Positions 2,781 to 46,270 of a stretch of DNA of 64,000 nucleotides are shown piece by piece. Location: contig NW_025767080.1 of NCBI RefSeq assembly GCF_003918875.1, positions 2,108,001-2,172,000 on the forward strand, in the 5' to 3' direction. Under the pieces are notes generated by a model that was not told the origin of the DNA, ran no database searches, and was given only the letters and a program-made list of their open reading frames with translations. Every line of letters starts with the position of its first letter. Position 1 is the stretch's first letter. Origin of the DNA: Haliotis rubra. Taxonomy: Eukaryota. A program made the position numbers and the translations under genes.

Positions 2781-2906
2781 ATTGACCTGGCTGACATTAA
2801 AGCCAAGTATGCTGAGCTGTATGGAAAGACTCTCAAGGAGAAAGTTGAAGCGGAATGTTCTGGTCACTACAAGCGGACATTGCTGACCATTCTCGGGGAG
2901 AAGTAA
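2781..2906 (+). CDS. Annexin gene 1, last coding exon
   Basis: tcacag| IDLADIKAKYAELYGKTLKEKVEAECSGHYKRTLLTILGEK-TAA; phase 0 join to the previous exon gives the canonical RSE|IDL. Confidence 0.95.
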   Translation: MDLADIKAKYAELYGKTLKEKVEAECSGHYKRTLLTILGEK

Positions 2907-12071: not shown

Positions 12072-12378
12072 TAACGACTCATCAAAAGATGACAAAGCAA
12101 AGGCTAAAAACGAGAAGAAGAAAGCTGGTGAAAAGTCTGAGAAGAAAAGCGTTTACTTAAACAATGGCCCCAGTACAAAGGAGAATGCTAAAAATACGAA
12201 GGGGAACAAAATCAAATCAAAGTCAGAGAAGTCCATAGATGAAAAAAAGAAGTCTGGCTCCAAGACACCGATGCTGGCAGAAAGAAGATCACCCGATGGA
12301 CAGAGCGATGAAATAAATGATAAGAAAACTAAAGAAAAAGATGAAGCGAAGGAAGACAATGCATGGGAAACAATGGAG
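12072..12378 (+). CDS. Annexin gene 2, Lys/Glu-rich N-terminal tail exon
   Basis: cttcttacag|T AAC...GAG|gtgtgt, 307 nt, open in one frame: NDSSKDDKAKAKNEKKKAGEKSEKK...KEKDEAKEDNAWETME; phase 0 join to the 16732 exon. Confidence 0.7.
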
Positions 12379-16731: not shown

Positions 16732-16813
16732 CCGACAGGAACGATCAAGGCGGCGACAGACTTCAAGCCGGAAGAACAGTGCAAGATACTGTATAACGCG
16801 ATGGATGGAATCG
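16732..16813 (+). CDS. Annexin gene 2 exon (start of repeat I)
   Basis: ttttctag| PTGTIKAATDFKPEEQCKILYNAMDGIG |gtaagg, 82 nt. Confidence 0.93.
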
Positions 16814-17318: not shown

Positions 17319-17516
17319 CACTCATGATGGAAAGTGAGTAGTTTTGTTACCACTTTGCTTTCCTACATACGGGGAGATTCTCACATAGCACACGATAATC
17401 CTTGCGTTGAACGCAGAGGTTCCTATTCTCAGTATTTCATCACAGCATATGACACAGCTGTAAATGCCCTGTTGATACAACTACGAATTCGTCATAGAAT
17501 GTGTTTGTACGAATAG

Positions 17517-17611
17517 GTACGGACGAAGAGGCCATCATCACTGTCCTGACATCTTGCAATAATTCTCAGAGACAACAACTGAAGAAAACGTACAAGAAAA
17601 CATACAAGAAG
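17517..17611 (+). CDS. Annexin gene 2 exon (repeat I)
   Basis: gaatag| (G)TDEEAIITVLTSCNNSQRQQLKKTYKKTYKK |gtgagt, 95 nt. Confidence 0.93.
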
Positions 17612-18056
17612 GTGAGTCGGGGTCCGTTATATGCCATTTATGAATAATGCTTCAACGTCATGTATATATGATATACGCCATGTCTCTTGAACGAGAGTCC
17701 CGTTACTTGACGGCTACACTGGCTTCCATAAGAGTAACTATGACAAATCATCTTGTAACGTTCGGTTAATAGTGCTTCGTCTGAAACTTTCAGCCATAAC
17801 GTCATATTACTAGTATGGCTATTCATATCTTTAAATGCCGAACGAGTTTTCATAAAGATTATTTTAGGTTTACAGTGATGTTTTGCTTCATGAAAACTCT
17901 CACAGTTAGACACAGTCATGTCATTATCATTCACTGTGCTGATTATTTGTAGCTTAATCTATGATGGCCGATGAAATAACAACGTTAACCCTACTTGAAG
18001 TAATGGAAACTTTCAGTCATATCTCAAAGTGAACGATATCACAGTGACTGAAATGA

Positions 18057-18121
18057 CAGATCTTCATCACACACACAGATCTTCATCACACACACAGATC
18101 TTCATCACACACACAGATCTT
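18057..18121. repeat. 19-bp tandem repeat, ~3.3 copies
   Basis: CAGATCTTCATCACACACA repeated. Confidence 0.9.
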
Positions 18122-19222
18122 AAATTAGAACGTATCGTGAAGAAGATCTGGGTTCTACTCCTCCCATGACCACGAATGGTTCATATATATCATATTTTCA
18201 TATTATCCAAACGTAGAAAAATCCCCCGACTTCCTCCTCCTCTTGGAGTCTACTGTGAATGGCGTGGAAGTATAGTATAGCAGTATAGCTGGGTCCAGAC
18301 AAACAAAGTGATGCTAGTTCTGCGTTTATTGTTTTAGCTGTGAGTCTCCTCTTTCATCAAGCCCGGGCCTGGGAGCCATTTTCATGAAGAGGCCCATTAA
18401 TACAAACCGACAAACACTTAGATCAGAACTGTATGTCTTTTGTATGTACATGCATTCTACTTTTGGCATTTCGAAGCCGCCATCCATTACTGTAATGCAT
18501 GTGTTCTCCCTAACAGTTAGTCGAATGAAGTCGTTCACTTACTGATAAATAGAAAGAAAACAAGGGGGACAACCGACTTATCACAGATGTGGTGTAGGTA
18601 ATATACTTGGGTTCTGTATATATACGAGATAATCATTATGCTGTTTTGAAATTGCAGGCGTTGGCGTAAAGTAACGTCTTTCGCAACACCATGTCAACGA
18701 CGTTAGCACGAAATTTTAGCGGTGATTTCCTTTTTTCTTTTGTCATTATGATATTTAACGAGGAAAGTATTTACACGTGGAGAATAATCCAGTCCCTTGC
18801 TTTCCGTCCATTGTAAAGACGTTTTAGACCAATCAGAATGCAGCTCCATTGAAACTTCTGAATACACAATTGCATAATATCATCTTGTGATGCAGGACTG
18901 TTAGACTTAAGTTTTATAATCTAACGGTTGTGAGTGATGTAACGCTGCTTGGATTGTACTGTAGCTACATCATGGTGTCAGCTGGATGTGGGAGATAAGC
19001 ATCAAGTGATGCCGGTCTTTGATGTTCACTACTTTAGTCAAACCCACGAGTTCAGTTATGTTGACACCTAACATAGACAGAGCGAACCGAGCACCTGCTG
19101 CCTGGATTAACCCCTCGCTCTAACTGTCCATTGCACTCAGCAGTCAGCGCCAATTAACCACTGGCTTCCCTTGGTGTTATCTTATCACTATTGTGGTTTC
19201 ACGTGTACTTATACAGGTATCT

Positions 19223-19339
19223 CGGGTTCGAATCCCCACATGGGTACATTGTGTGAAGCCCATTTTTGGTGTGCCCCGCCGTGATGTTGCTGGAATATTG
19301 CTAAAAGCGGCGTAAAACCAAACTCAGTCAATCAGTCAG
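19223..19339 (+). mobile_element. 5'-truncated family-B SINE
   Basis: Starts at the B box; TSD TATA(C/T)AGGTATCT at 19210-19222 and 19340-19352. Confidence 0.88.
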
Positions 19340-19371
19340 TATATAGGTATCTGTGTCCTATTTTTTACATT

Positions 19372-19450
19372 CACCTGATGAACGGAGTAAGAATACACTC
19401 CGAAACGTGTTCCTCAAAAGACGTTGACATCCATAAAATTCTTGCCTTCA
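19372..19450 (+). mobile_element. Penelope-like terminal fragment with degenerate minimal hammerhead motif
   Basis: CAC-CTGATGA-(GGAGT loop ACTCC)-GAAACGT, followed by GTTGACATCCATAAAA shared with other fragments in the window. Confidence 0.55.
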
Positions 19451-20422
19451 CTCTTGGTCTGTCAGTCGGATCCGTGATAGCGGTGAACTAATTCATCTGC
19501 ACTCTACAACCTATCGTTTATTATTGACCGGAAACATTGCGTTGGCTGGCACGTGCAACTCTCGCCTTGAAGCAAGGTCGCAGTAAGAAAACATTAAACG
19601 GTAGAATTTATGTACTGACATGACTTTGATTTGCTATATATTCTATATTTGACATATAGAAACAATACGCCCGGAATAATATGATCTTGGGTTTCATATT
19701 TAGTGTGATTTAGAAAGAGATTATCTGTTTTTACAAGTCTAATATTATCTGTTCATGACATTTCATAAAAGACGAGACTGAGGCGACGCTATAATGATGA
19801 CCAACAAAAGAAAATTGACCCAAAATGATTTGTTCCAATAACGTGACTCACCAATTTTAAGGTGGCGATCACTATTCACCTATCACATGCTCACTATCAC
19901 AAACCGAATAGCTTGCAGTATACTGATCCCGACTGAATTGTAAATGTAATAAAGCGATGGCTGAAACAAACGTGAGTGAAAACTAAATCACTCTGTGAAT
20001 GATTTCCGTTATAACACACAAGATGTTACTGTTGGTGAGGTCACTGTGCGAAAACAAGGGCCGGTGGATATGACCCCTTCTATGTTTGTCCTGGCCCCAT
20101 CAGAGGTCCCATCAGAGGTCTAGTTGTCTTCCTTCATTTGGCATTATGATCCAGTTTTCGTCTGTTGTTGCATCGTACTATGACTTACCGATTAGCAATA
20201 ACAAAGAATAAACGATAGATATAAAACATTAACTATCATACAACTGTATGACTAAGGTGATGACTTAGAAGTTTCCCGTGGTCAGTTTTGCCTAATTATC
20301 AAACAATACACCTGCAGCTTTCGGTGTCTACAGTTTGCACCTGTTCAGCTGATCATGCCCTGTCTACCAAAATGTAAAGCATCACACGGTTTTTGCTCAA
20401 AAGTTTACACAATCAGTATTGG

Positions 20423-20640
20423 TTTGTTCGTTTCCTGTTAAACGAGGCACTCAGCACTGTTCGAGCTGTACGACGACGGTTTCTTAAGGCAGATCAGTCA
20501 AACGAATGATTGATATTGTGAGCAAACTTTCATCGTTGGGTAAAGTAAAGTCACCGAGCCTAACCACAGATTCATTTAGTCTCCTAATACGACAGCCATG
20601 GGCTGGTTGTGGTCTAGTCTAAACAGAATCCCCAGGGAAT
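20423..20640 (-). mobile_element. Decayed V-SINE-like element (family C)
   Basis: GCACTCAGCA...GAGCCTAACCAC...TACGACAGCCATGGG, similar to the 51088 copy. Confidence 0.55.
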
Positions 20641-21732
20641 CAGGTGAGATAAAATAGTACAAAACCCGGAATAGACTTATCATTCTGGACGCAGACTACC
20701 CAGCTGGGAGGAATCCTAAAGGATGCTGTTCCCATATATCCCACTTCAGCGAGTAATGCTGTACCAGGCTATAGCGTGTTGGACTAAATCTACCTACTGA
20801 CCATGAGTGTAATATTCGGTTTCCACCATCCTGTCAGTGAAATGTATAGTCTTCCAGCACAGCTATAGTCCAGCCGATTAGTATTGACCAGTCCAGTGAG
20901 AGTCTTCATGAGGACGAGTTAGCGAGTAAATTCAATAAGGAAATGTGTGTTTAGGTGAGAATCAGTTTGTTAACTGTTGAACCCTTGAAACGTCGGGCGT
21001 TGATTACCTTGGGAAATTGATTTCCTAAGTCCTTATTCCCAAATGAAACCAACTCATCAGCGTCATTCTGAGGTGTAAGTGAACCGTCTCGGGGCCACAG
21101 TTCCAAAAAAGCTTTTCCTGGATCTGTGATGTGGGTTAAAAGTTCATTCTTGTGTAAGGATTCGATACAATTCGTGGTCTATCTGATTTAGTTATTGTAT
21201 TAAATCCTGCTTCATTTGATGACTTGACATTATCAGACAATTTTGTCTGGTCAGGGTGTTGCGGGTTATTGTATAACAGGAAGAGCCCGTTGTTTATTAT
21301 ACTCTTTTTCAATGTTAGACAGTATGTGATTATAGTTTATTGAAAAGAGTGCTTTGTATCTGTCGGGAAAATTTGGCCGGATGTAGAATGATCAACGCCG
21401 CTCACCAAACGGGTGCATGCTTGTCTGTTGACATCACTTGACCAACATTCCAAAGCAGTTGCATGTATGTATTTAATGACAATTAGAACTGATAACATAT
21501 GGAAGAGAATCGTGTGGGTGTCAGATTATAATGTGTTGTGGGGAAGACAGTATTTCAGAGTAAATGCTTAGTACTCCATCAGTTGAATGGATCATTTTCA
21601 CCAGATGAAGGAGTAAATATATATTCCAAAACTGTGTGTTCCTAATAACAAAGAATTTGCAATAAATGAATTCACTCCCCCATTTAAATTTATGTTTACG
21701 TTTGGTGAGTTTACTTTCCTTTTGCTTTGCAG

Positions 21733-21909
21733 GAACTGATGGCCCATTTAAAAGGGGAGCTTACCGGGGACTTGGAGGAAACGGTGGTCTTGCTGCTTAT
21801 GGAACCAACAGAGTTTGCTGTCGAGGGAATGCATCGAGCCATGGATGGAGTTGGAACTGACGAGAGGCTTTTGCTGTATGCCTCCCTTGTCCACAGCACT
21901 ACAGCACAG
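21733..21909 (+). CDS. Annexin gene 2 exon (end of repeat I, start of repeat II)
   Basis: tttgcag| ELMAHLKGELTGDLEETVVLLLMEPTEFAVEGMHRAMDGVGTDERLLLYASLVHSTTAQ |gtagat, 177 nt; phase 0 matches the 26123 exon. The 3' boundary is the first of five identical donors. Confidence 0.85.
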
Positions 21910-22205
21910 GTAGATAATGATGTATTTGCAAAAGTCACACTTGTCCACAACACTATACCACAGGTAGATAATGATATATTTGCAACAGTCACGCTTGTCC
22001 ACAACACTATACCACAGGTAGATAATGATATATTTGCAACAGTCGCACTTGTCCACAACACTATACCACAGGTAGATAATGATATATTTGCAACAGTCAC
22101 ACTTGTCCACAACACTATACCACAGGTAGATAATGACATATTTGCCAAAGTCACACTTGTCGACAGCCCTACACAACAGGCATTTATTGATATATTTGCA
22201 CACCA
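21886..22205 (+). repeat. 54-bp minisatellite spanning the exon/intron junction
   Basis: Unit CTTGTCCACAACACTATACCACAG|GTAGATAATGATATATTTGCAACAGTCACA, ~6 copies. Confidence 0.95.
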
Positions 22206-22836
22206 CAGATAGATAGTGTTGGATAAGCAATAACCACCATTGTCCACTGTGCTTGCGTGCGTGCGTGCGTGCGTGTGTGGAATAATCTACGTCGCACTCA
22301 CGAATAAAAGAAGTTGTTATCCATAAAGTATGTTCTATAAATCGTTCTTCGGACAAATAGGTAAGGTTGTAGGAATGAAGACAAGAGTTATTTATATCAA
22401 TCTCAACAACACATTCGAAACATGGATAGCCGCTATTTTTCATTTTGTCATCAGTGAAGGGTCATGAAATCGCTCTGTGAATCTTGCCTCCACAGAACCA
22501 CCTAAGCTCGCTGCTCTTGCTTTAATGCAGCATTTGTGATCCGACTGGGAATACCTCATCTAGTCGTGATGAACGCCTAAGGCCTACTGGCATGCTTCAA
22601 GATGGAAGACCGTAGCGTGGGGTAGCCAGTATGTTCAGTGTGTCTCAGTCTGTAATTTGCAGACACATGAAGTAAAATATAGAACCCCCGAAAACCAAAC
22701 ACATCGATGTTTACTCGCGTCAGGTCACTATAACTATAGACTGACAAGACGATAAGAAATTGTCTTTATGTTCGGCGACCACTTCTAGTACCATCATTAC
22801 ACACGGACACTGACAGAATCACCGAAGGTCTCGTGT

Positions 22837-22893
22837 GATGGATGTGGACGTGGACGTGGACGTGGACGTGGACGTGGACGTGGACGTGGACGT
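22837..22893. repeat. (GTGGAC)n microsatellite
   Basis: About 9 hexamer copies. Confidence 0.95.
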
Positions 22894-22894
22894 G

Positions 22895-23340
22895 TATGGA
22901 GACGTCCTGTACAACGTCAGTTTAAGGCAACATGTCATATCTGAGGCTATGTCTGTTGTGATATTGGGCGGTATCATTATAACTGCAAGGATGCCCCTGC
23001 AAATTGTCCATGGACAATGCAACCGAGACAACTTACTGGCGCCAAAAGTTTTGCCGTTTGCGTGCCACGCCGACCCACGCGTTGTATTTCAAGACAATTT
23101 AGGCTCGATCCCACCCCGCACTTAAAGCAACTGACTACCTGCAGCAGCAAGACATCCCCAGAACACGGTTCCCGCCATGAATCCTGCCCTTTTCTAATAC
23201 AGCACGCCCGGGACATGATCGAGTTGCGTGAACGCCGACGTCAAAGACCACCAACTTCGTTACGGGCCTAGGCGCTGCAAGATGAGCGGACAAGACATTG
23301 GTTGAGCTTAATTCGGGCCATGTCATGCTGTATGAAAAAA
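22895..23340 (+). pseudogene. Decayed Tc1-type transposase remnant
   Basis: SVVILGGIIITARMPLQIVHG...RDNLLAPKVLPF...VFQDN parallels the 40578 transposase (SVMIWGGITARQRTPLVIVQG...RDQILRPVAIPF...FQQDN); frameshifted. Confidence 0.75.
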
Positions 23341-24975
23341 AGTTGACCAACCTGAACTGTTTAACTTCTCATCTCTGTCGTCTACATCCTTACGACAGAC
23401 AGCCAACATGGTCTACTCATTGTGTAACACATGGTCCTTTCTATTCCATATCCATCTATGGCTATAACTCATGTACTACTGTACTACATCATAACTGCAC
23501 AGAACAGCAATACATTACAATGTTATCCTATTGGCATTTTTGAAACAGTATAGGAACTCGGTCTCAAATAACACACTTATGGTGGGAAGATGCCATTTAA
23601 AAAATAGACTAGGCTAACGGGACGCTGTGGCCTGTGGCCTGACCAGTTCCATCACACACAATACTAGGATGCGTTCAGGGGTTTGTGTGTTCTAGGCCTG
23701 ATTAGTCCCAGGATGCTGGAATAGTGCTGAATGTGGCATTGCACAACATTCAGTCAATGAAACTATGATTCGCCGTTATATCTGGAGCTACACGGAAACC
23801 ACACATATCCAGATTTGAATACTAAATGTTAATATTAAAAGTTGAGTTATTTGAACTATAGGGTTAAGTGACTATTATCCAGCCTTATGAACATGAGCAG
23901 GCTGTTCTTCAGTCTATCGATCTCCTCTCCTCCTCTCCAAGTAATCCCCATGCATCTTTCAATCTTCTGAATCCTCAGTTCACTGCTGACAGCATCTAGT
24001 GATTCCACTTTCAGCGCACACAATGAGATCAGTATTCAATATCGCTTAAACAGCCTATCATTAAAGATACAAACATATCTGATAGCATTATTTGTGTCGG
24101 GAGCTTGGTGTTGACACGACTTGAAAGGAGAGAAGCTCTATCGACGATGTTTGTCAGGGGAACTCAAGTATGGAAACCTTGCAATGCCAAGGCGCCATCT
24201 TAACTTGTCGTTGTGTACGAGCGAGTCTCTGCCTTTGGCTGTCGATGTGGCTCCTTGCCCTTTTCATCTGTCCCGGGGTGAGAAGCTGACATAGTTATCG
24301 CTTTCATGTCTGGATCCAGGGGGTCATGAGTAATCCCCAGCATCTTCGTTCTCTCCAGCAACTCCACCAATTAGCTTTCTTGTTTGAAGGCTCGAGTGTT
24401 GTCATATGTTCTTTGATTCAATTGCAAGAAAAGGCAATATTCATTTATGGATTTAAGGAGCTAACACTCGCTCTATTGATAAATCCATCTGTATTGTCGA
24501 CATATGTATTTTGTGTTCATCATTGATCAACCAGAGGTTGACAGCATGAACAACTATCCACCAGCTTGGCTTCATGATGCTTTCAGCTACATCAGCTGGA
24601 GGAAAGCCCAAAGTGACGCCCGTATTAGACATTTAACACATGAAACCCACAAACAAACACGTTTCTGACACACCTATAAACATAACCATGGCGAATGTGG
24701 CGTTCGAACACACGACTAAATCAGCGAATTGTCACGCCTTGGACTATTAGGCCATCCGTACCCTGCTTGGTCTGGTGTGACGATTTTTGTTGTTAAACAC
24801 AGCAGTAGTCCATTAATACGACGGCATTCTGTCAATAATCAAACCAAGACCATATAACATTTGACTAAAGTACAACAGGTAGTAATTCTTGACATTTAAA
24901 GAGTAGTCGAAGAAATGACGATACTAGCTGTTAGTACAGCAACACGTTCCCGATTTGTACTTTTGATGAGTGTAA

Positions 24976-25325
24976 CCGCCTCCGTGGTGCAGTGGTTAGA
25001 GCGTCCGCCCGGAGAGCGGAAGGTCGCGGGTTCGATCCCCGACCGCGTCATACCAAAAGACGTTAAAATATGGTATTTGTTGGTCCCTGCCTGGCGCTCG
25101 GCATTAATGGGTACAACAAGGACTGGTCGGCTCGGAGTCAGTATAATGTGTCTGAGTGGGGTATTCATACTTCACTGCGGCATGGTATCTTAGTGGGCTA
25201 GCACTACAAAACCAGCTTAAGTCTGGGCTAGTACAAGCAGCCGCACATACACATACACACGCATGCAAGCCGTCATATGAGCGAAATATTCTCAAGCACG
25301 ACGAAAACCCAATTTCACCTCACCT
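24976..25325 (+). mobile_element. Full-length family-A SINE
   Basis: Closely similar to 12434-12794; 16-bp TSD CTTTTGATGAGTGTAA at 24960-24975 and 25326-25341. Confidence 0.93.
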
Positions 25326-26122
25326 CTTTTGATGAGTGTAATCGGGCAACATGTCTGGTACAGATGTACGTGCACACTGTGAGTGTTGGAGCTAGCTGTC
25401 TTCGCCGCCGTCGAGTGTTGTCTAGGGCGCCGTAGTTCGGTGCGCAATGCCCTTCATGGGTCCCTGGAATTGTCTGATGAGAACCATCCACATGAATGTT
25501 GGTTTCACCAAAGTGGTGAACGTCTAAGACTTGCTCTGGATATTGTTCCAATCGGCGTTCAACCCAACCGAATCTCTGACTAACATTGAGGGCCCTTTTC
25601 TATGGTATGGAATTGGTATCTTGCATCCTACAATTATATACCCCTGTGCTATCAACGCTGTGTCGGTTGAACTTGAATTCAATACAATTCTGCCTGCAGA
25701 CTCAAATTCCATCCGATTATTACTTTGTCGGAATCATTAACTGTCATAAATGTCAAGTATCTGTGTCATGGGGCCACTTGTAATGGATACAACAGAAGGT
25801 CACTGGCTCCATTTTTTGACCATAGAAAAAACGTTGAAAGATGGCACAACCCCTCCAGCAATTGACCAACATCTACATATATACGGACTGTCGAGAAACA
25901 GATTTTATAATTTTATATCATTTTAGTTTAATATTGATAACAAATGCCTAGGCTTAATAATATACGTTTTGTTTTGTCCAGCCCATTCGTCTTGTAAAAT
26001 CCCATTCATAGTGATAAGTCATAAGTTGATGTTTGATATTTACAGTTAGCAAAGTTTAGCCGTTTTGGTTTCGTGATAATTTACATTCACAAACATGATA
26101 ATAAATCGTTGTTATTTTTCAG

Positions 26123-26156
26123 GATCTGAAGAGTCTGTGCAAGAAGTATAAAGAAG
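26123..26156 (+). CDS. Annexin gene 2, 34-nt micro-exon (repeat II)
   Basis: tttttcag| DLKSLCKKYKE(A) |gtgagt; aligns with the annexin 'EIxxIxxxYxx' helix. Confidence 0.88.
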
Positions 26157-26379
26157 GTGAGTCAGCTATGCATTATATGCATGGAGGTTTTACAGATACC
26201 ATGTGTCATACCAACGTCTCATAAACAATCCTGGACTTCTTGCAAACAGTAATATTTCCATGCCACTATAGCTCTTCGCTGGCTTCGTACAATCAGTAAT
26301 ATTGCCAAAACTACTGGATAGGAAGACGCGTGCAACTTGGCAGTTTGCTCAGGTTGGATGGGATTCTCGTCAAATGCAA

Positions 26380-26468
26380 CATGTGTTATATTTGGGATTA
26401 AACTTTTTCATTAAAGATTCTAGTACTTTGTTAGGTTGAGTCACATCTGGGGTTCGAACCCACACTCT
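26380..26468 (-). mobile_element. Family-D SINE 3' fragment
   Basis: Reverse complement of GTGTGGGTTCGAA...ACTCAACC...AAAGTACTAGAATCT...AATCCCAAATATAACA seen at 54278. Confidence 0.7.
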
Positions 26469-26733
26469 AGTTGTACGTGGTCCGTGATCTAGACTACCAG
26501 TTTTTACCCAGTCATATGTCGCAGACGTAATCAGGACGAATCTGGAATACGAAAAACACGATCACTAGTTCCTCTTACCCTACGGGACGCAACTCTACAC
26601 AGAGAACTGCAACACTGAAGACGAATGGGTCCTAGGAAACATTGGTTTGTGTAGAAAGTAATTGTTTGTTTCTTCTGAAGGGCATCCTGACTCTATCGCG
26701 TATCACCTTATATATCATTTATTTAATCTCCAG

Positions 26734-26882
26734 CGCACAAGAAGGACCTGAGTAAAGCGGTTTCGTCCGAGACCAGTGGCCTGATTCAAAAAGTTCTTCT
26801 CAACATTTTGGCGGGAAAACGTTCGCAGACGACACAAGTCAAGGAAAAAGATGTTGAAGAATCAGCCAAGAAACTTTATGGA
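26734..26882 (+). CDS. Annexin gene 2 exon (end of repeat II, linker, start of repeat III)
   Basis: ctccag| (A)HKKDLSKAVSSETSGLIQKVLLNILAGKRSQTTQVKEKDVEESAKKLYG |gtatgt, 149 nt. Confidence 0.93.
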
Positions 26883-28930
26883 GTATGTAGTTTTGCTTCT
26901 CTGTTTTGTTTGAAATCTTTGAATTCTGAACATCGGCAAAGCGTCATCAATATTCTGACAATTGCTTTTTTTAAAAATCAGAATTACTATGGATACGTTC
27001 ATATCACTTGACCCCGTTACAAAGCAGTATATAAAAGCTTTTATCCCAACGGCGCCTCGTACCGCTTAAAACTGGTTCGTATGGTGTGAATGGACCTTAA
27101 GGTTTGGGGAGTAATACGTCTGCTGGAGAACTGGAGTTACGCCAAACATTACATTAATATCATTGTAGCTAAACTGCATCATCTCGGTGTGAGATACTGT
27201 ACCAGCCGCCCAACACCGCTTGTACAAATCTCATTGTATTCACCACATGATTGTATTTACGCAAACCTGCACTGTCTCTCAGACGACTACAACAAACGGA
27301 TCTCGTGTAACGTTGTTCCATCGTGACAACCCAGCGTGTTTCCACGTCAAAGACGATACTATTTAATTATTATACGTGCATAAACACAGTGGTGCAAAAA
27401 ACGATGTACCTTGAAACTACAGAAAATGAATTTTTGGAAATGTTGATATGTTCAATGAAATTGTATTTCAAAGCGAATCCTACCAGGGATCCATGTCGTG
27501 ATTCCAGTGTGTCAAATTGACAAATGTTTGCTCAAAGTGTTTTTCATAACCACGATTAAGATCCCATGCAATGTTTGTTGTAAAACAATGAAGATATAAT
27601 GTTTCTTATACACCTGTAGGTGAGAAACCCATGGGAGAAAACTGGTATCAAACATATGTGTGATATCGATTTCTAAGGCTGTGATTGGCTACTCCATGAG
27701 GATGACCTAGGGTCAGATTATGACGGACTCTTTTCCTGATGACATTTCATTGAAAAGTTACTCATGCTTCAACCAAACCTGTTACTCGTGCCAAGCATTA
27801 TTACACTTACCTGTTATTTCGGTGATTGTAACGTAAACAGAGGATTATTTTTATGTTAACAAATTCACTCATGACAATCAGAAACAAAACACTCTGGGTG
27901 AAATAAGGTACAACGTGAAACGTGTGTTGCAAATGGCGACACATAGCATTTCGAATCAGTTCCACATCTACAGGCACAGTATATCTCCACAATTAGCCCA
28001 TGCAGGATGTAATCAACTCACATTTCATCCTCGCAATACCGTAACATCAGTAGCATCATAAGTGGCAGTTTAGGGCTCTGTAAAAACAAGATGGCTGTGG
28101 CAAAGAAGAGTAGTCCCCCCTCGACAGTGAACGTCACTTCCCCAATGTCACATTCGAGCACTCGGATTACACTTTATTGAGACACTAAATATTTTTGACT
28201 CCGGGCCATCGGAGAACATTGAATGTCATCTTTTACACAAGTACAGATCTCCAATGTGCAAAGATATCCAAACAATCTACCGATGACAACAACTATATCC
28301 AAAGTCAATGAGCGACACTACAAAACTATTATAATGACGCCACACGCTCAATTAGTGTTTGCTTGCAAGATGTAAAATCACCTACGTCAAAATGGCAACG
28401 TCGTCGTTTATGGGTGTTTATTCAATTGTCATTGATCTTATCTAGTTTGAATTGTCATCATCGTCTTGATAATACACAAATGTGGCAGAAACCTTTTTGT
28501 GGAGGGTCACCTTGGAGATGAGTAATGATTGGGAAGCCAAGCGACGTCACTCATTCATAAACGTTGTGTTGTGTATTAAATTGCGGTACTATGAGAAAAT
28601 ATGAAATTGTATCTATTCAACTATGAAATGGTGCGATTTTATGGTGTATAAGAAACAGATTACTGTGCTCGTGTCTGTCAGATACCATTTATCTTACAAC
28701 TCGTTTATCAAAACGTATCTAACTCGCTTTCGCTTTAGATGCGTTCACATAAATGGTTTTCTCACAGACATTCGTGTAGGAATATCTCTATATGTATGTT
28801 CTTATTCATCTTTAGCGGAAGAAAAACCGACAGCCGCTTTAACCGATGAATTGTGTACGTGGTATTGGGGTCTTTTTCTAAATTACCAATCGATAAGATA
28901 AGGCAAATATCTAATATCAACATATTTTAG

Positions 28931-34790: not shown

Positions 34791-34892
34791 GATGGTGAAA
34801 ACGCATTCAAATATGACGTGGAATACTGCGCTGACCTGCTCACCACCCTCAGCCCGAGTCAAGCCAAGGCTGTGTTCTCCCGGTACAAGGAG
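34791..34892 (+). CDS. Annexin gene 2 exon (repeat III)
   Basis: cttcatag| DGENAFKYDVEYCADLLTTLSPSQAKAVFSRYKE |gtaagg, 102 nt; aligns with the annexin 'AGExxWGTDE..F..IL..RS..QL..VF..Y' segment. Confidence 0.88.
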
Positions 34893-44440: not shown

Positions 44441-44516
44441 CTTTCTGGAGAGGATGTGACGAAATCTATAGAGAAACACATGGCGGGTTATCCTGAAATG
44501 GCTTGCCTATCGGTTG
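44441..44516 (+). CDS. Annexin gene 2 exon (end of repeat III)
   Basis: tgttgcag| LSGEDVTKSIEKHMAGYPEMACLSV(A) |gtaagt, 76 nt. Confidence 0.9.
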
Positions 44517-45041: not shown

Positions 45042-45154
45042 CGCGCTACCTTCAAAGCCCATATCTGTACACAGCGCACGTGCTGCACGAGGCAACCAGC
45101 GGCACCGGCACCAACGACAATCTATTGATGGCCGTCATCGTCGGCAGGTCAGAG
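45042..45154 (+). CDS. Annexin gene 2 penultimate exon (repeat IV)
   Basis: attacag| (A)RYLQSPYLYTAHVLHEATSGTGTNDNLLMAVIVGRSE |gtgagt, 113 nt, same length and phases as exon 1866-1978. Confidence 0.94.
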
Positions 45155-46141: not shown

Positions 46142-46270
46142 ATCGACCTGGTAAACATCATGATGGCCTACAAAGCTATCTTTAAGAAGTCCCTGGAAGA
46201 TGTCGTGCAGAGCGAGTGCAGTGGAGATTACCGGAAGCTGCTGTCCGCCATTTTGAAATATCAATCTTGA
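46142..46270 (+). CDS. Annexin gene 2 last coding exon
   Basis: tttaacag| IDLVNIMMAYKAIFKKSLEDVVQSECSGDYRKLLSAILKYQS-TGA. Confidence 0.94.
   Translation: MDLVNIMMAYKAIFKKSLEDVVQSECSGDYRKLLSAILKYQS

Follow-up and report, generated by a model that had tools for sequence, protein, structure and literature searches.

In one described class of minisatellites, the first monomer lies across an exon-intron boundary, so that the donor site is repeated inside the intron (Borensztajn et al. 2006, PMC1557585). In human F7 intron 7 (IVS7; 37 bp unit, 5-9 copies), experiments have shown that only the first donor is used: the pseudo-donors are identical to it and functional yet silent, and when the first site is inactivated splicing moves to the next one (PMC1557585). 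The first donor alone is also used in human LMNB2 (100 bp unit, 10-15 copies) and PDGF (81 bp unit, 16-18 copies), and the next two pseudo-sites are additionally used in IFI6-16 (IFI6, intron 2; 25 pseudo-sites) and in CBS intron 13 (15-20 repeats), two arrays in which constitutive use of the first one or two pseudo-sites is thus possible (PMC1557585). In amphioxus, Adh3 and the globin genes BflGb6 and BflGb9 carry "mirage" minisatellites that leave splicing undisturbed (PMC3087553).

Our analysis confirmed an array of five identical 5' splice sites in a 64,000-nucleotide stretch of Haliotis rubra DNA (hereafter the window), running from the end of an annexin exon into the intron that follows (Table 1). 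This abalone array belongs to the known junction-spanning ("mirage", F7-IVS7-type) class of minisatellites: it is arranged in tandem, its first monomer spans the boundary, its pseudo-donors are identical to the authentic donor, and its inner units are homogenized while its boundary units are diverged. As in F7 intron 7, a boundary-spanning first monomer is followed by identical pseudo-donors with a single acceptor in common, the donor is sub-optimal, and no masking RNA structure has been found. The two arrays differ in their units (54 bp with 24 exon bases in abalone, 37 bp with 4 in F7) and in reading frame, all abalone sites being in-frame and stop-free whereas most F7 pseudo-sites shift the frame; moreover, use of the first site is an experimental result in F7, while in abalone we infer it. 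IFI6 (6-16) intron 2 and CBS intron 13 are likewise described as junction-spanning arrays of reiterated donors, but with many more copies and with documented use of pseudo-sites, and no such transcript is known for abalone. With the amphioxus mirages the array shares an invertebrate tandem duplication of an exon-intron boundary, inner units that evolve in concert and boundary units that are excluded from homogenization (PMC3087553). The amphioxus genes keep normal splicing despite the AG/GT signals present in the copies. They are different genes in a different phylum, with units of 10-160 bp, and their arrays have been shown to vary in length both between alleles and somatically (PMC3087553).

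Table 1. Features of the minisatellite and of its host gene in the window (a slash marks the splice point).
Feature	Coordinates	Strand	Evidence or remark
Junction-spanning minisatellite, units U1-U6	21886..22200	+	Tandem Repeats Finder (TRF), units in register, identity matrix, genome uniqueness
Authentic donor D1, CAG/GTAGATAA (GT at 21910)	21907..21917	+	Used in RefSeq model; junction search
Four pseudo-donors D2-D5 (GT at 21964, 22018, 22072, 22126)	21961..22133	+	
Dead sixth site in U6, CAG/GCATTTAT (CAG/GCATTT at 22180)	22177..22187	+	U1 duplex -4.5 kcal/mol
Decayed array tail: truncated unit CCACAG-ATAGAT (donor G lost), then start of another unit, ATTGTCCACTGTGCT	22201..22250	+	
Exon (start unnamed)	ends 1978		tblastn, junction search
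Exon	2781-2902		tblastn, junction search
Lys-rich linker exon	12072-12378		tblastn, junction search
Exon	16732-16813		tblastn, junction search
Preceding exon, repeat I of core 3, donor AAG/GTGAGT	17517..17611	+	tblastn, junction search
Annexin exon, 177 nt, 59 codons, phase 0-0	21733..21909	+	tblastn; junctions 17611 to 21733 and 21909 to 26123
Next exon, 34 nt (DLKSLCKKYKE + 1 nt)	26123..26156	+	tblastn, junction search
Following exon (AHKKDL...KKLYG)	26734..26882	+	tblastn, junction search
Exon	34791-34892		tblastn, junction search
Exon	44441-44516		tblastn, junction search
Exon	45042-45154		tblastn, junction search
Exon	46142-46270		tblastn, junction search

TRF scored the array as 5.8 copies of a 54-nt period (91% matches, 0% indels, score 497). 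When the units were placed in register, unit U1 proved to be made of the final 24 nt of the exon and the initial 30 nt of the intron, which upholds the claim of an earlier note on this DNA that an exon end and an intron start had been amplified together. The donor recurs in each of U1-U5, and D2-D5 equal D1 letter for letter from -3 to +8 at a spacing of 54 nt. Since the exon is 177 nt long its donor lies in phase 0; D2-D5 are also all in phase 0, and each step would add 18 codons if used. The five identical phase-0 donors and the degenerate sixth CAG/GC previously described are therefore present, and so is the 54-nt, 18-codon, stop-free unit, as the annexin frame stays open over 21709-22209 (167 codons), with stops in every array unit in both other frames. 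The extent first given for the array was right as to the 54-nt units that begin at 21886, but decayed units continue to about 22250, in a tail that resembles units V1, V2 and V4 of the array in a contig from a distant congener (L002), and these degenerate extra units make the array longer and older than its 5.8 scored copies. No second copy of the 411-nt array region was found in the 1.38-Gb genome; the region therefore does not belong to a transposon family, and a satellite carried by a transposable element was ruled out.

The surroundings of the array are also repetitive. A (TGCG)n microsatellite (22250-22275) directly adjoins the decayed end of the array, and 600 nt beyond it TRF detected a hexamer repeat, (TGGACG)x9.3, at 22839-22894. 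The 4.2-kb intron and its surroundings hold high-copy interspersed repeats (22285-22504, 24858-25400, and 26306-26486), at which read depth exceeded that of the flanks by a factor of thousands in each of four runs, two of them RNA-like and from a related species. A tRNA-like GGTTCGAACCC motif at about 26440-26500 suggests a SINE in that stretch.

The host protein was reached by a phmmer search with the 157-residue read-through of the array, followed by a second search. It is XP_046579891.1 (P0248; 1464 aa), named "titin homolog [Haliotis rubra]" in RefSeq, and it matches the window exons at 98-100% identity (tblastn). According to Pfam marks, this protein carries a CFAP97 domain at its N-terminal end and, besides it, three annexin cores, and the minisatellite-bearing exon belongs to the third of them. 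The earlier note had correctly recognized an annexin exon, but this exon sits in no stand-alone annexin gene: it encodes part of a long multi-annexin protein, and a search for stand-alone orthologues of 175-556 aa yielded nothing closer than 41% identity. In XP_046579891.1 the Lys-rich linker exon joins annexin core 2 (the exon ending at 1978 and the next one) to core 3, and the two apparent annexin genes in window positions 1-46270 are one gene. The second of them thus requires neither a start codon nor a myristoylation leader of its own. The corresponding gene ranges in H. rufescens, H. cracherodii, and H. asinina are 111-146 kb. PF00191 was matched at 17510-17611 and 46142-46252 of the window, and the phmmer matches comprised many annexins.

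The third core has the four repeats of five helices and the G-x-G-T loop of annexins. An AlphaFold2 model of residues 1147-1464 (the 318-residue core; pLDDT 93.7, pTM 0.90) contains 20 helices in the annexin pattern, with G98, G100, and T101 invariant across the underlying alignment. Helices D-E of repeat I and helices A-B of repeat II come from the minisatellite-bearing exon, which stops two residues into helix C. In the model, helix B of repeat II covers residues 103-113 and helix C residues 117-131, and the splice junction follows residue 118, at the helix B-C turn and not in mid-helix; the placement of the array inside annexin repeat II, already proposed from the DNA, agrees with this.

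Comparison with the congener contig gave the array a relative date. Identity between contig and window is 87% for the exon, 78% for the upstream intron, and 70% for the intronic half of unit 1. At the same junction the contig carries two 54-nt units and two longer, decayed ones that are 67-76% alike, with the donor-like sites CAG/GTAAAT, AAG/GTAAAT, and CAG/GTACAT and a dead CGG/GG; both copy number and units differ from those of H. rubra. A degenerate array at the same junction in this congener implies that the duplication of the junction predates the split of these lineages. Within H. rubra, identity is 96-98% for U2-U4, 93-94% for U5, 89-91% for U1, and about 80% for U6. As read from these identities, the middle of the array is the recently expanded and homogenized part and the edges are apparently older, and this pattern of inner and edge units is the usual minisatellite turnover.

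Neither the few differences between units nor the congener identity gave a sign that the array is selected to encode protein. In its intronic half, unit 1 is conserved no better than intron, which, set against the values for exon and upstream intron, shows no sign of coding constraint. By chance, the unit length would be divisible by 3 with a probability of 1/3 and ten intronic codons would stay open with a probability of about 0.6, roughly 0.2 jointly, so that an in-frame, stop-free unit is unremarkable and is not evidence of selection.

Two local patterns of variation were observed at the junction. In the congener contig (L002:1324-1431), units V1 and V2 are only 67% identical overall, yet over the donor 13 consecutive nt (AGGTAAATAGTGC) are the same in both; a match this long has a chance of about 0.08, and it could hint at donor-core conservation or conversion, or be a coincidence. 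In the exon itself, 6 of the last 13 codons (21871-21909) vary among four Haliotis species and the congener contig, compared with 5 of the first 46, and identity to the congener falls from 89% over the rest of the exon to 75% over its last 24 nt, which form part of the repeat unit. This variable end may reflect a relaxed helix B, or minisatellite turnover that drags the exon end along, the numbers being small.

The donors were then compared by their pairing with U1 snRNA, whose genes in the H. rubra genome have the canonical 5' end ATACTTACCTG. The predicted duplex is -8.0 kcal/mol for each of D1-D5 and -8.2 to -10.8 kcal/mol for the other donors of the host gene; we judge D1-D5 to be adequate but sub-optimal, within the range of the real donors of the gene, and sub-optimal because they lack a G at +5. 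In competition experiments, sub-optimal donors of this kind favor mixed use. Folding of 21733-22260 revealed no unusual RNA structure (z = +0.57), so that nothing indicates or requires that the later donors be masked, and the idea that RNA structure hides them was rejected. The U1 snRNA genes form long tandem arrays in which they recur about every 627 bp (G000 contigs C727, C1200, and C2497; L003-L005), and at least 42 genome matches were found, most with identical scores.

Annotation points to the first donor. The junction search found that 21909 to 26123 is the sole junction that reproduces the annotated protein, and the acceptor at its end (TTTTTCAG/) is common to all possible donors. The H. 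rubra RefSeq protein reads ...LVHSTTAQ/DLKSLCKKYKE, which is the product of the first donor, and the RefSeq models of H. rufescens (isoforms X1-X3), H. cracherodii, and H. asinina are joined at the homologous point. In these models, which may partly rest on protein homology and do not necessarily report minor isoforms, the isoforms differ solely in an N-terminal Lys-rich region. The protein cluster of H. rubra has a single member. A phmmer search with the read-through (157 aa) against 1.84 billion representatives returned no insert-bearing protein except P0002, and P0002 was also the only hit for array-encoded words among 5.8 billion proteins, in a word search that covers 86-275 aa and is silent on longer proteins. 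P0002 itself is an ORF predicted from a genomic contig of 1683 nt with the upstream intron included, and hence is not a transcript. The read runs were DNA-like, under four organism labels, together with two small RNA-like runs from a related species (X11 and X12); over 21600-27000 the latter had zero depth at the exons 21733-21909, 26123-26156, and 26734-26882, and their coverage was confined to the high-copy repeats at 22143-22504, 24858-25400, and 26306-26486.

From the annotation and from analogy with the described systems, the whole array is probably spliced out as intron, mainly or only from the first donor. The earlier note had argued that, if this were so, something must suppress the later, equally strong donors. 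That premise is unnecessary: the pseudo-donors of F7 IVS7 are silent as the most upstream site wins, so position alone suffices and no suppressor is required (PMC1557585). Some considerations run against splicing from the first donor alone: the donor is of the sub-optimal kind that favors mixed use, in-frame products of later donors would escape nonsense-mediated decay, and two of the five human precedents (IFI6-16 and CBS) use the first two pseudo-sites.

The same precedents lend some plausibility to the view that one or more of D2-D5 are used along with D1, inserting one to four modules of 18 residues each at the turn between helices B and C of repeat II, with a possible number of isoforms set by the copy number of the allele. 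In favor of this view, the insertion site lies at a turn in the AlphaFold2 model, every product would be in-frame and stop-free, and each unit ends in LVHNTIPQ, which restores the local context ahead of helix C; moreover, the donors have the same sequence and equal pairing with U1, and the congener array is likewise open through two further donor-like sites. We nevertheless regard this as unlikely. The insert is absent from the annotated isoforms of four species and from the databases within the scope of the searches above, the intronic half of the unit evolves like intron, the open frame has the chance probability already given, and the identical pseudo-sites of F7, at 37-nt spacing, are silent (PMC1557585). 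If the exon instead extended through the repeats, with the last good donor (22125/22126) used constitutively, the open frame would be accounted for, and duplicated-donor constructs do sometimes favor the downstream copy, nearest to the acceptor, in the debate as summarized in PMC1557585. This is highly improbable, given that the orthologues of four species lack the insert, that the core of 318 residues adopts a canonical annexin fold in its absence, that the congener units are decayed and vary in both sequence and length, and that the RefSeq model uses D1.

An error of assembly, in which the copy number or the entire array was built from a single junction, would agree with the short-read contigs of run X1, which break in the array at 21962 and resume at 22310; the DNA contig of that run matches 21600-21962 without a difference, and given the break the copy number is not independently confirmed by short-read contigs. 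Several observations make such an error a very remote prospect: the differences between units fall at specific positions and are ordered, with diverged edges, the independent congener contig carries an array at the same junction, read depth over 21962-22142 in run X3 (from a related species) is 61 compared with about 14, the roughly 4-fold excess expected of a collapsed repeat, and 315 nt of array is far shorter than long reads. The donor could also lie elsewhere, for example at CT/GTATGC (21875/21876) followed by an unseen micro-exon, where a GT is present. Its predicted U1 duplex is only -1.9 kcal/mol, however, and the residues encoded by 21876-21909 (LYASLVHSTTAQ) are matched in all orthologues (LMYSTLVHSAKPQ and LMYATLVHSATPQ) and complete helix B in the model; with the protein reproduced solely by the junction 21909 to 26123, we consider the chance of such a donor negligible.

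The array probably began with an ancestral tandem duplication that took in the last 24 nt of the exon and the 30 nt of intron that follow. The inner units were probably expanded and homogenized later, in the H. rubra lineage, by replication slippage or unequal exchange, leaving the edge units diverged, and the outcome is five identical 5' splice sites at 54-nt intervals. Splicing probably runs mainly or only from the most upstream donor (21909/21910) to the acceptor at 26123, with the array removed entire as intron to give the annotated protein. The later donors are probably competent but lose by position, the first suitable donor past the acceptor and enhancers of the exon being the one taken.

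As it stands, the array is an ordinary intronic repeat, for which no effect on the protein has been shown, and it adds a mollusc example, dated by means of a congener, to the known donor-reiterating minisatellites. Use of the pseudo-donors at a measurable level is doubtful. If it did occur, there would be variants of the annexin core in which repeat II is lengthened at its helix B-C turn by one to four modules of 18 residues each, in a range of isoforms set by the inherited repeat number, and peptides containing VDNDIFATVTLVHNTIPQ would mark the products of later donors. Because mRNAs from later donors would escape nonsense-mediated decay, even minor use would be easy to see, and the choice among identical tandem 5' splice sites could be measured in an invertebrate system free of such decay. 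With every pseudo-donor in-frame, any use would give stable mRNAs, which would let this abalone gene serve as a clean natural experiment on positional (first-come) choice among 5' splice sites in a non-mammalian animal.
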